A DNA stretch of 45,531 bases from Klebsormidium nitens (GCA_000708835.1 DF236958.1:428694-474224), one strand, 5' to 3'; shown: positions 24,937-29,076, numbered from the stretch's first letter. Numbers and translations are program-made. Notes: generated by a model not told the origin, from the letters alone.

Positions 24937-26012
24937 TTTATTGAGTCTTCGAACTTGTTAGGCACGCTTGATGAGTAGGCCAGGAACAAACTTCGGCATA
25001 TTGCCGAGAGTTGAGCTGCGCATTGCAGAGCTATAGCAGTTGGACCGCGGGATACCCACATTCCTCTGGGGAGGTATTGCAAGACGTGTTGTGCTAAAAT
25101 AATTGCTCGATGACACAGAGTTTTAGTCCATTGCGAGATCACAAGATGCAATTTTGCCTTGAACATCGAACGATTGACAGTTCCTGCATGACGTCATGCA
25201 CCTATTCAGCTAGAGACAACCATGTTGACCCAATATCACGTGTGGATGTATTGTCGCATATGTCTTTTTGTCGCAGGCCCGCGAGCGGGAAAATCCCATG
25301 AATGTACTACTTAGTCTACGACCTAGTTGACTAGCCGCAGGTGCGGCCGGTCACAGAGCTGTCGTGCTTCTTCGCACGCGCATGATCTGTAAGCAGGAGT
25401 TTGATGTGAGCTTGCCACTGTGCGAATATATTTGCCATACGGCTAATTTAAGTACGATCACGTACATATCGTAGAGCTGGCAGCATTCTGTCGAGCTACA
25501 TATACGAACCGCCATCAACTACATGATTCGAAGCTCAAGTGTACCAAAAATCCGTTGTATACTTCCACGCGCTTCGTCTATTCAGACCATGCCACATACT
25601 CTCGAGCAAAGCCTAGCATGCTTGAAAAACAGCACCCAGGCCCCGAGATGCATTCGGTGCAAGCAGGCACTTGCTATGCTCCTGATAATGTCCACGATTC
25701 CGTCATTTATCCTATGGAATTTTTCCCTTGCATACTCAGAAACTTTCCTACCATGCTACTTTGCGTACCAGACTTTCGTCATCACCTGTTCGTCAGTTTA
25801 CCTTGTCCAGCTTCTCACGACCACTCTACCTAGCTTAGTAAGGCCAAGGCCACAGCAACACGGTACAACCCGAAAACGCTCAAACTCTCCAACGTGCTAA
25901 GATTCAACTCGAAAGATCAACATGCTCTCATGTGATCCAGGGTTGACCATAGAGACCTCCTGCCCCGCTCCTAGACTCTTGATCAAGACCGTCCACGATA
26001 GGCAAGCGGCTT

Positions 26013-27697
26013 CTATGTTGGCTTTACAAACTGGAAGTAGACTCGACCGGACCTTGACATGCGAGCTGGATACACCTGTGGGTATAGTCAAGAACGGGGT
26101 TGCTGGATACCGGTAACTGCTGTGTACTGCACATGTCGTAGGTTGCAAAGCAGCGGTGCGGCTCGCTTGGCTGCTTGAGCTGTCAAAACAAGAGTAGCTG
26201 CCATTCGTCGCGACAGCACAGTGACCGGAACACCGCTTTGCTCTCGACAGAGAACAAATGGGGGACATAGCTATACAAATGTGTCGTACTGTATTGGCTC
26301 ACCTTCGTGTTTTCGCGAGGGGCCTTCTCTTTAATGGTCCCCACAATCCATTGCATCGGCCCGTCTTTGGGGCAGTATTCAAGCACCGTCCCGTCGAGTA
26401 GCGAGAACTTGGAATGACACAACGGGCACTCAATCTGCGGCCCCTTGCCGTCGGCAGCTGTCGTCACCTGGGTCACACAGCAGCACACGCCGCACATGAT
26501 GGAGGAGCGTACACCACAGCTGTCCGAAAATTCACATTGACGGGCTGTGCCATCACTCCAAGGACCAACTTCTTGCCATCTTCCAGCGGATTGTGAGAAG
26601 ATGTCCTCTTACCGGGTTCTGGATTGCACTCGCTGCCCGCTGAAGAGCAACGGGGCAATTGGGGCGAATCTGTTGTCAGATGCAAAAGTAAATGTCCGTT
26701 AAGATTTATGGAGGAGGCTGTGGTGGCGCTAGGCGGTGCTCACCTTCCCTTCAATGACGGGAAACTTGCAGGAGGCGCAATTGGCGTCGATCCCGTACAG
26801 CTCATCTCCGGACTTGATCACCACGTAGCTGAAACGCAAGCCAGTGCGAGGGGTGAGATCAGTATCTTTGCACTTCTGATTGTTTGCACTCCCAAAAGGA
26901 GGCGAAGCTAAGAGACCAATTGTCGGCCTTGCCTATCTAGAATTGGCAAACCCAGCCACTATCTTAGGCGAAGCTGAAACAACTTGTATCGGGGCACGCA
27001 TGGCATTGAGTCGAAAAGGCAAGAAGTGTGCTTAAAGGGTGGTGTACTTATTTGCAAAATACAGGCAAGGTTCCTCACCCCTCTCCTTTATGGATGGTTG
27101 CCTTGTTCGTTCCTTCCTCAACTGACAGCGACGGGGCAACCTGCAAGAAAGTGCTTCTGCTCAAGGGGCCACATCTCTGGTCAGCTGAATGTGACCTTGG
27201 AAGGTTAACATATTCTGCAACACGCGGTGAAGAGAAGGTGCCGAGGCCGCCACTGATGACAAGATAACCAGCAATGAACACAATCTAGGGTACTGAAAGT
27301 GAATGTTTGAGGTGGAAGCTGTTGGAACACCGAATCCGCAGATCACGACACCCTCTGTGACCCCATTGGTTCTTCCGGCGTCGTTCGACTTTGGGACCTG
27401 GGTCATTGACACACTCTTCAGGCTACTCTGCGGGTAGACGGTCGAGATGTGAACGGGCCTCCGCGCTCCACTCACCTCTGTCCAGCCCTCCAAACTCTTC
27501 TCTTTTTGACTGGCTGCCTTTTGTCCCTTTTTGTCAATCTGGCTTTTTAACCGGCCCGTCCTGCCCCAACCCTCCGGGATCTCAGGGGTGCCGGCTGCCC
27601 TTGCGGCCTGGCTTCGGACTGAAGGGTAAGCCCGCCCCTGGCGACGCTGATCATAAGGAAGCAAGGTGCCGAAGAAGCCATTGCGATTGCCCTCTGT
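26013..27697 (-). CDS. Rieske-fold (ferredoxin-type) protein with CxxC/CxxC motifs; 5' end unresolved. Exons 27697-27476, 27140-27079, 26828-26744, 26467-26303, 26075-26013
   Basis: Spliced: ...EKSLEGWTE|VAPSLSVEEGTNKATIHKGEG|YVVIKSGDELYGIDANCASCKFPVIEGK|VTTAADGKGPQIECPLCHSKFSLLDGTVLEYCPKDGPMQWIVGTIKEKAPRENTK|VYPARMSRSGRVYFQFVKPT*. The W-x-x-V start, IDxxC, ECPxxxSxFxLxxG and VYP...G-x-V-Y end all match the Rieske ferredoxin pattern. Phases 0, 2, 0, 0 are consistent. Confidence 0.85.
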
Positions 27698-29076
27698 CTG
27701 CACAACAAAGAGACGCCTCGCTATTCCCGACGGTTGACAGAACCGGTTGGCAGGCCGAACCCACCCCGTAGAGCTTCCTCGCTGCCCTAAACCCCGGGAA
27801 CCATCTGCTTCAGCTGAAACGACGGCACATGCTTCTATCTCTTCACAACATCGTAGGATGGCTGGAATGAGATATACTCATCGCACTGGTGGTGCAATGA
27901 AAGAATCTCTCTTATCAGGCGCGCCAGGAAACAGGCAGACATCATTGGCTGTTTGCTTGTGTCACGTCTCCCGCAGGCAAATTTGACGACAGTTCTCCAC
28001 ATTATATAAATGTCCGGGGTGGTTTCCAATGTACCTTCAATTGGTGTGCTTCAACCTGCTTCAGTCTGTTGTCCAACTTGTTTCCAAATCAGTGCGAGAG
28101 CGATCATATGCGCAGGCAGCCAGCTCAAACAGTGGAAGCTCTCCAAAGTTGAAACAAGTTTCATACTCACTTGTTGAGTTGACGCTGAGCAGCAGTTGAA
28201 CCGTGCCCAGGAAACAGCGCCGGCTGCAGCAGTTGCATTCGCCATTGCAAACGTACAACTGCAGCCTCCGAGCACAGCAGAAATGCGACCAGGCCCCTTC
28301 CAGCTGCAACAAGGAAGCAGAGCAAGGGGTGACGAAGAAAGCACCTGCGCCGCCACGCCTGGGATGGATAGGAGAGCTGGTGCAGCTCCACCGACTTTTG
28401 AAAGCTGCTCAGCGGACATGTCTGCACCTGCGCAGCTCCCACCTTCACGTGGTCAGCCACGTCGACCCAGCTTCTCCACAACCATCCTACGTCGTGACTT
28501 ACTTTCATTTGATTGGTACCTCTTCTCTGCTACCGGTGATTATCAGCCGTCGAAAGTTATCCAGTGTACCAACTTATGGAACTTTGGCGTGCTCCGATGG
28601 CGCTATTATGTGAGAGTGTGCCTCCACCTCTAGTTTGACGATGCGCCATACAGACTCACAAGTCAATATTGTAATTCCAGGTAAAACGTCCTCTGCAAGG
28701 TCAAAGATGTCGTTGATCTCTCTAATTTTTGACGACCAGAAAGAGCTTGCAGACATGAGCAACAGATTTGCATGGATCTGCACACTGTAAGCATGGCAAT
28801 CCGAATGAGCTGAATTTGCCATGTCGAATTTGTGCCAACTAGAGACGGGGTGCATCAGCTGTAAGCATGATCTCCATCCCACAGCTCAACGATCGACGTA
28901 GCTTTGACCAGTAAATGAAGGCAAGTAGAAAATTTGCCATCAACCCAGTTGAAGAGCATCATCAATGTATCCGATAGCTGAATCCGACAAGTTGTGTAAC
29001 CTTATTTCCATATTGTCTCTGTAAGATCTCTATTGTACACCAATCGCGGTCGCACCCTAAGTTTCTTGTTTTCCGA

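Follow-up and report, generated by a model that had tools for sequence, protein, structure and literature searches.

The stretch of DNA considered here in full, referred to as the window, comprises 45,531 nucleotides of Klebsormidium nitens (GCA_000708835.1 DF236958.1:428694-474224), and its minus strand carries, from 28245 to 26013, a six-exon coding sequence of 223 amino acids with an intact frame and a TAG stop (Table 1). The product is predicted to be a soluble protein of the PSB33-like family, composed of an N-terminal presequence of about 95 residues and a 128-residue Rieske-fold domain in which two C-x-x-C pairs occupy the places of the usual cysteine and histidine ligands. The analysis follows up an earlier note on this DNA, which had described a Rieske-fold protein with both histidine ligands replaced.

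Gene structure and expression

The Rieske-fold interval to which the earlier note had drawn attention (26303-26828) corresponds to exons 4 and 5, parted by a 276-nt intron, and the junction that it had proposed there is one of five joints read from transcriptome contigs: 28171/27697, 27476/27140, 27079/26828, 26744/26467, and 26303/26075. The skipped parts are all bounded by GT..AG on the minus strand. All five joints are present in contigs of four sequencing runs from four different studies, which match the window at 99+% identity, and word depth amounts to about 120-450 for the spliced contigs versus 4-28 for intron-retaining ones. Since the RNA label of these runs is a guess by software, the presence of transcripts in them rests on the spliced joints; the gene is expressed and spliced. 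Low-depth contigs crossing introns 5, 4, and 2 (26048-26329, 26440-26769, and 27113-27503, respectively) occur in all four runs and derive either from pre-mRNA that had yet to be spliced or from small amounts of genomic DNA carried into the libraries.

The end of exon 2 reads ...KSLEGWTE, the start of the Rieske domain, and lies in a block (27505-27468) conserved in an environmental relative encoded on metagenome contig L001 (JGI 3300060285). Exon 4 encodes a stretch ending ...GIDAN-CASC-KFPVIEGK, and exon 5 encodes ...QIE-CPLCH-SKFSLLDGTVLEYCPKDGP.... An alternative start at the ATG of 28419-28417 (minus strand) was rejected, as no contig reaches beyond 28412 and the lengths of the orthologues' N-termini fit the methionine at 28245. 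The upstream ATG is in frame with the 28245 start, 58 codons away with no intervening stop, and longer transcripts, if they exist, would extend the presequence by 58 residues.

Table 1. Features of the gene and residues at or near the Rieske ligand positions, in window coordinates; UTR, untranslated region.
Feature	Position	Strand	Description	Basis
5' UTR	28246..28412	-	To the limit of the contigs	Contig pieces ending 28348-28412
Exon 1	28171..28245	-	Start ATG 28245-28243; 25 codons; Ala/Ser/Thr-rich, transit-peptide-like	Joint 27697/28171 in 4 runs, translation, composition
Exon 2	27476..27697	-	Rest of N-terminal region and Lys-rich linker	Joints 27697/28171 and 27140/27476
Exon 3	27079..27140	-	First beta-strands of the Rieske fold, VAPSLSVEEGTNKATIHKGEG	Joints, conserved block in L001, orthologue alignment
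Exon 4	26744..26828	-	Box 1, C-A-S-C	Joints, translation, ligand alignment
Exon 5	26303..26467	-	Box 2, C-P-L-C-H; family-specific CPKDGP motif; helix	Joints, translation, ligand alignment
Exon 6	26013..26075	-	Last two strands, VYPARMSRSGRVYFQFVKPT; stop TAG 26015-26013	Joint 26075/26303, block in L001, alignment
3' UTR	25643..26012	-	Contigs extend to about 25640-25750	Contig pieces
Cys137	26779-26777	-	Box 1; aligns with the Cys ligand of Rieske box 1	
Ser139	26773-26771	-	Aligns with His ligand 1	
Cys140	26770-26768	-	Aligns with the residue after His ligand 1	
Cys162	26428-26426	-	Box 2; aligns with the Cys ligand of Rieske box 2	
Cys165	26419-26417	-	Aligns with His ligand 2	
His166	26416-26414	-	Next to Cys165	
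Cys180	26374-26372	-	In the family-specific CPKDGP motif	

Cysteine pairs at the Rieske ligand positions

In the Rieske fold, a textbook example, the cofactor is defined by the ligands that hold it, two cysteines and two histidines, which the Pfam Rieske family (PF00355) has as C-x-H in box 1 and C-x-x-H in box 2. Neither box takes this form in the Klebsormidium protein: box 1 is C-A-S-C, with Ser139 at the histidine position and Cys140 directly after it, and box 2 is C-P-L-C, with Cys165 at the histidine position. This mapping was obtained from a family-profile search of the PDB, in which the alignments to three solved Rieske proteins (8jng_A, 5bok_A, and 2qpz_A) agree, and it upholds the replacement of both histidines, by serine followed by cysteine and by cysteine, that had been read from the sequence in the earlier note. 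A single-sequence phmmer search against the PDB returned no significant match and misaligned box 1, and the profile search was used in its place.

The mature domain contains only two histidines, His116 and His166, neither of which is at a Rieske ligand position. As a candidate ligand His166 was rejected, the residue being Gln in Mesotaenium and Gly in other four-cysteine (4-Cys) subfamilies; with no other histidines present and His166 not conserved, a 2Cys/2His site is therefore impossible. Box 2, in the general form CPxC[G/H], equals the knuckle of rubredoxins and zinc ribbons, and sub-threshold zinc-ribbon matches in Pfam fall upon it.

Fold of the domain

Assignment to the Rieske fold was proposed from the sequence and is corroborated both by Pfam gathering scores and by structure prediction. 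The Pfam scans covered the window exons singly and the orthologues at full length, and family membership rests on the latter: against Rieske_2 (PF13806, cut-off 27 bits) the orthologues score 27.1-39.8 bits, with 38.8 for the Physcomitrium protein P0008, and against Rieske (PF00355, cut-off 20.3 bits) P0008 scores 30.9 and P0009 27.3, while P0006 and P0007, at 19.9, lie just below. Single exons of the window remain below threshold (exon 5 alone reaches 14.4-14.9 bits on Rieske_2), yet the four domain exons align without gaps to the orthologues that pass, and the spliced protein scores 181 bits over residues 94-221 against the subfamily profile (A2).

An AlphaFold2 model of P0008:90-232, built from a 65-sequence alignment, has a mean predicted local distance difference test score (pLDDT) of 91 and a predicted template modelling score of 0.83, and places both knuckles in loops after strands, within blocks averaging pLDDT 94-97. 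When this model was compared with the PDB by Foldseek, the top matches were Rieske ferredoxins (5bok, 2qpz, 2yvj_B, CarAc, and TDO-Fd), among which the BphA3 structure 2yvj_B superimposed with a root-mean-square deviation of 2.0; structures of NirD and 8jng were also recovered. No rubredoxin family was found in the Pfam scans of exons and orthologues, and the fold is that of Rieske proteins.

Orthologues and conservation

Contig L001 shares five conserved blocks with the window, at 78-86% nucleotide identity and coinciding with exons; its translations carry CASC and CPLCH, and the exon structure is that of the window gene. The orthologue, which has the same exon order, occupies L001:1797-4600 on a 44-kb contig and had been split by prokaryote-style gene calling into the 'hypothetical proteins' P0002 and P0003. 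A related species lives in the environmental sample from which this contig derives.

A word search with the 104-aa open reading frame (ORF) around exon 5 yielded only ORF fragments from prokaryote-style calls on eukaryotic contigs; a second word search, by way of the 158-aa fragment P0005, reached spliced bryophyte proteins, and the close orthologues were named by a profile-based word search of a 5.8-billion set. They comprise proteins of streptophyte algae (Chara braunii and Mesotaenium endlicherianum), of five liverworts (Marchantia polymorpha, M. paleacea, Riccia fluitans, R. sorocarpa, and Calypogeia), of mosses (Physcomitrium, Ceratodon, and several Sphagnum), and of ferns (Adiantum capillus-veneris, A. 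nelumboides, and Ceratopteris); no seed plant was among the orthologues in either the word-indexed or the 50%-cluster searches. The Klebsormidium protein shows 52-57% identity to the orthologues with species names and as much as 61% to P0200, a transcriptome entry, and its membership in the 4-Cys PSB33-like subfamily is given by a whole-domain profile match together with the motifs C-T-x-C, C-P-L-C-H, and C-P-K-D-G.

The pattern C-T-[S/T/A/V]-C with C-P-L-C is kept in every full-length orthologue with a species name, over 20 in all, and the four cysteines form invariant columns in alignment A4. Retention of the histidine ligands, which the earlier note had held out as fatal to its proposal, is seen in no named full-length orthologue, and the four-cysteine pattern whose conservation it wished to see tested proves to be kept across streptophytes and present in haptophyte and stramenopile subfamilies as well. 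In the linker before the Rieske domain, five orthologues (P0007, P0008, P0010, P0011, and P0013; A4 columns about 85-100) display a basic motif, P-P-K/E-Q-G-R-G-x-N-A-K/R-K, which is common to the land-plant and Mesotaenium proteins; in the Klebsormidium protein a Lys-rich stretch resembles it only loosely. The motif might be a membrane- or partner-binding tail.

The wider family and the order of ligand changes

When 1.84 billion cluster representatives were searched exhaustively with HMMER, only 177 proteins reached E <= 0.001, and these fall into three kinds: 4-Cys, ligand-less, and canonical C-x-H/C-x-x-H. Besides the streptophyte proteins, 4-Cys groups include C-G-R-C...C-P-L-C-G in Nannochloropsis and C-R-x-C...C-G-L-C-G in the haptophyte Chrysotila, among others. 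The large ligand-less group, to which the green algae Coccomyxa and Tetrabaena belong, has S-T-A-[Y/F] at the first box and x-P-L-D at the second, and some of its members possess a C-terminal hydrophobic helix about 50 residues past the domain; the canonical form is represented by two proteins, P0148 and P0219. Of the distinct sequences whose alignment spans both boxes, 65 carry the full set of four cysteines and 83 carry none of them, compared with five that have one, two with canonical Cys/His ligands, and none with three. This all-or-none distribution is what a single cooperative site predicts. Feature searches of the ESM Atlas returned only generic Rieske clusters.

In a quick maximum-likelihood tree from which the eight motif columns had been removed, the ligand-less proteins form one clade (support of 95 in the Shimodaira-Hasegawa-like approximate likelihood-ratio test), and the Klebsormidium protein falls within the streptophyte 4-Cys group in both trees. 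Rooted on the canonical proteins, the tree needs only two changes to account for the three ligand states and is consistent with an order that would lead from [2Fe-2S] through Cys4 to no ligand; as the columns are few, the branches long, and the outgroup only two rows, this order is put forward as a hypothesis.

Two observations on individual members may be added. Three proteins of Amorphochlora amoebiformis and relatives (P0119, P0149, and P0198) form, on long branches within the ligand-less clade, a small group whose boxes read C-P-P-Y and x-x-L-T, with a single cysteine at the first ligand position only. In a 676-aa protein of Tetrabaena socialis (P0090, PNH11225.1), annotated as a BASS4 transporter, a ligand-less Rieske-like domain (100-222) is joined to a protein with six hydrophobic segments; the gene model has probably merged two neighbouring genes, rather than recorded a real fusion.

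Proposed nature of the cofactor

In the mechanism proposed here, the two cluster-binding loops would have been turned into C-x-x-C knuckles, C137-A-S-C140 and C162-P-L-C165, which together would hold one metal ion tetrahedrally via four thiolates, as M(Cys)4 with M being iron or zinc. The closest precedent is ARF, the Sulfolobus solfataricus Rieske ferredoxin, whose engineered H44I/K45C/H64C form acquires a rubredoxin-like Fe(Cys)4 site (Iwasaki et al. 2005, reviewed in PMC2946596). In that mutant, as in the natural family, the first histidine is exchanged for a non-ligand, the next residue becomes cysteine, and the second histidine becomes cysteine, so that both proteins have the form C-x-x-C...C-x-x-C. 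Because the natural family has this triple change and because its box 2 equals a rubredoxin or zinc-ribbon knuckle, a mononuclear M(Cys)4 site, with either iron or zinc, is the most likely state of the four cysteines and is favoured with some confidence; that a metal is bound, and bound singly, we infer from the engineered precedent. As to which metal, a rubredoxin-type Fe(Cys)4 redox centre and a structural Zn(Cys)4 site are each possible though somewhat doubtful, the former being only marginally ahead, and an occupancy other than these and the two alternatives discussed next would be improbable.

Instead of a single metal ion, the four cysteines could bind an all-cysteine [2Fe-2S] cluster, resembling that of plant-type ferredoxins and carried on the Rieske scaffold, with a potential much below that of a Rieske centre. 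The family's ancestor bound [2Fe-2S], to judge from the canonical members P0148, P0219, and 8jng_A, and the single ARF mutant H64C does assemble a 3Cys/1His [2Fe-2S] cluster (PMC2946596). Nevertheless, the outer ligand of box 1 is shifted by one residue in the family, from C-x-H to C-x-x-C, and the same change in ARF gave a mononuclear site; ARF with cysteine in place of the first histidine (H44C) fails at cluster assembly, and with cysteine at both histidine positions (H44C/H64C) largely does so (PMC2946596). In addition, C-x-x-C...C-P-x-C-[G/H] is the spacing of rubredoxins and zinc ribbons. Such a cluster is thus unlikely, and the four-cysteine site probably does not hold [2Fe-2S].

A second alternative would do without metal altogether, the CxxC pairs serving as redox-switch dithiols or disulfides (for example, with stromal thioredoxin) or as stabilising disulfides. 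CxxC is also a classic dithiol-disulfide motif, and NirD, PSB33, and the ligand-less sister clade show that no cofactor is needed for a stable Rieske fold; however, the all-or-none occurrence of cysteines at the exact ligand positions fits one shared site better than two CxxC pairs, and a knuckle geometry inherited from a metal site would put the four thiols around one point, which makes the metal-free state hard to credit. Lastly, the motif might be put down to a substitution private to this gene or to a sequencing error, both of which the earlier note had named as possible undoings of its proposal, or to decay of a normal Rieske ferredoxin gene into a pseudogene; all three readings are refuted by spliced transcripts from four studies identical to the window, by the intact frame, and by the presence of the motif in L001 and in more than 20 species.

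Several points weigh against the M(Cys)4 site favoured above. The C42A variant of rubredoxin is able to assemble a [2Fe-2S] cluster (cited in PMC2946596), and nuclearity is thus not fixed by spacing alone, a fact that also speaks for the all-cysteine cluster. ARF, the engineered precedent, comes from an archaeon and was expressed in E. coli, and the structure that was predicted is that of the orthologue P0008, 56% identical to the window's domain. The sister clade still has the Rieske fold after losing all four ligands, and folding therefore does not require the site; and the tie of that clade to PSB33/TEF5, made through the architecture of some members only, is not proved.

Location and possible role

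The first 60 residues of the protein comprise 13 Ala, 9 Ser and Thr, and 7 Arg and Lys, as against 2 Asp and Glu, and the relatives in the family are plastid-lineage proteins only. Given this N-terminus, in which Ala, Ser, Thr, and Arg abound and acidic residues are scarce, and given that all relatives are of plastid lineage, the protein is probably targeted to the plastid. No hydrophobic segment was found anywhere in it, no 19-residue window reaching a mean hydropathy of 1.7, and the Rieske domain ends two residues before the stop.

PSB33 and TEF5 act on photosystem II and photosystem I from the stromal side (PMC12164590). The relationship to 8jng_A, a chain of a red-algal photosystem assembly, together with the biology of TEF5 and PSB33, places the family at the photosystems, and we infer for the protein a role similar to that of PSB33/TEF5 and the red-algal chain, on the stromal side of the thylakoid photosystems. 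A more specific and rather doubtful extension is that the protein, with a natural Fe(Cys)4 centre on its Rieske fold, would carry electrons by means of one iron or sense redox state on the stromal side of the photosystems, as an evolutionary middle step from the canonical PSB33-like proteins of red algae and Chlamydomonas to the cofactor-less PSB33/TEF5. If that were true, the carrier or sensor would work in non-seed streptophytes and in the parallel haptophyte and stramenopile subfamilies.

Novelty and significance

Members of the family have only automatic database names, 'Rieske-like [2Fe-2S] domain-containing protein' and 'hypothetical protein', of which the former label is probably wrong about the cofactor. 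The literature searched contained no description of the family, of a natural Cys4 Rieske fold, or of a zinc Rieske fold, and prior characterisation, which the earlier note had counted among the things that would refute its proposal, was likewise absent from it. What is apparently new is the four-cysteine site, set on a known fold and in a known family neighbourhood; to our knowledge, only engineered proteins have until now been shown to hold a mononuclear Cys4 site on a Rieske scaffold. The natural family has made the same three changes as the ARF mutant, has retained them from a time before the lineages of stoneworts and ferns separated, and would give, on one scaffold, a natural series from the [2Fe-2S] Rieske centre through M(Cys)4 to no metal. 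The PSB33/TEF5 family, known for factors in the assembly and stability of photosystems, is also extended by a soluble member hitherto unstudied, which occurs in Marchantia and Physcomitrium, two plants in which genes are routinely knocked out. No such protein figures in the Arabidopsis plastid Fe-S inventory, and the apparent absence from seed plants may explain its omission from Arabidopsis-centred inventories of this kind (PMC6006212); a review of algal plastid Fe-S proteins makes no mention of a 4-Cys form (PMC8003979).

Comparison with known systems

The knuckles C-x-x-C and C-P-x-C-[G/H], with their predicted Fe(Cys)4 site, recall the rubredoxins, including plastid RBD1, from which the protein differs in fold and size. 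Engineered ARF shares the scaffold and the ligand changes but is a laboratory construct, whereas the Klebsormidium protein is natural, eukaryotic, and conserved, and has an extra helix and an insertion between its knuckles. NirD, the small subunit of NAD(P)H nitrite reductase (PF13806), is the best-scoring Pfam model for the orthologues and likewise a Rieske fold without the canonical ligands; its structures are matched by Foldseek (4aiv, 3c0d, 2jza, and 2jo6), its sequences match the family profile weakly (E 0.03-0.7), and it differs in having no metal site and in working with NirB in bacteria. The bacterial Rieske-type ferredoxins of dioxygenases (BphA3/BphF, CarAc, NDO, and TDO; PF00355) have the same fold and size, with Foldseek E-values of 2e-07 to 1e-05, target-normalised TM-scores up to 0.87 (that of 2yvj_B), and profile E-values of 1e-8 to 1e-7; they bind [2Fe-2S] via two cysteines and two histidines, whereas in the Klebsormidium protein, about 20% identical to them, both histidines are replaced.

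Closer still are soluble Rieske-fold proteins of the same family, namely the 'PSB33-like' Cre02.g093650, which has CxH/CxxH, orthologues in cyanobacteria, and none in land plants (PMC8003979), and the red-algal chain 8jng_A. The latter, whose deposited name is 'Methanesulfonate monooxygenase ferredoxin subunit of PBS-PSII-PSI-LHCs from Porphyridium purpureum', matches the family profile better than any other solved structure (E 6.9e-10) and has the best query-normalised TM-score (0.69); it reads CPH and CAQH and has the WCP motif and the C-terminal domain segment in common with the family. Six chains of the Porphyridium purpureum PBS-PSII-PSI-LHCs megacomplex were identified only later, by ModelAngelo, and the relation of 8jng to PSB33/TEF5 is apparently undiscussed in the literature searched. 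Both proteins keep the canonical C-x-H and C-x-x-H that the window's protein has lost, and the reported lack of land-plant orthologues of Cre02.g093650 contrasts with the occurrence of the 4-Cys subfamily in bryophytes and ferns.

Finally, PSB33/LIL8 (Arabidopsis At1g71500) and TEF5 (Chlamydomonas Cre09.g411200) resemble the protein in that their Rieske-like domain is of plastid lineage and departs from the canonical Rieske centre. PSB33 is membrane-bound with its ligands lost (PMC8003979), and the published PSB33/TEF5 architecture is a domain followed by a C-terminal hydrophobic helix (PMC12164590). Unlike these membrane-anchored proteins without metal ligands (PMC12164590, PMC8003979), the Klebsormidium protein has four conserved cysteines at the ligand-equivalent positions and, with no hydrophobic segment, has neither one nor two C-terminal transmembrane helices. 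The resemblance to PSB33/TEF5 already suspected in the earlier note is nonetheless real: the nearest large group to the 4-Cys proteins is the ligand-less clade, which has KFP, PL, [W/Y]CPK, and the extra helix in common with them, and some members of which show the PSB33 layout of a domain with a C-terminal hydrophobic helix.

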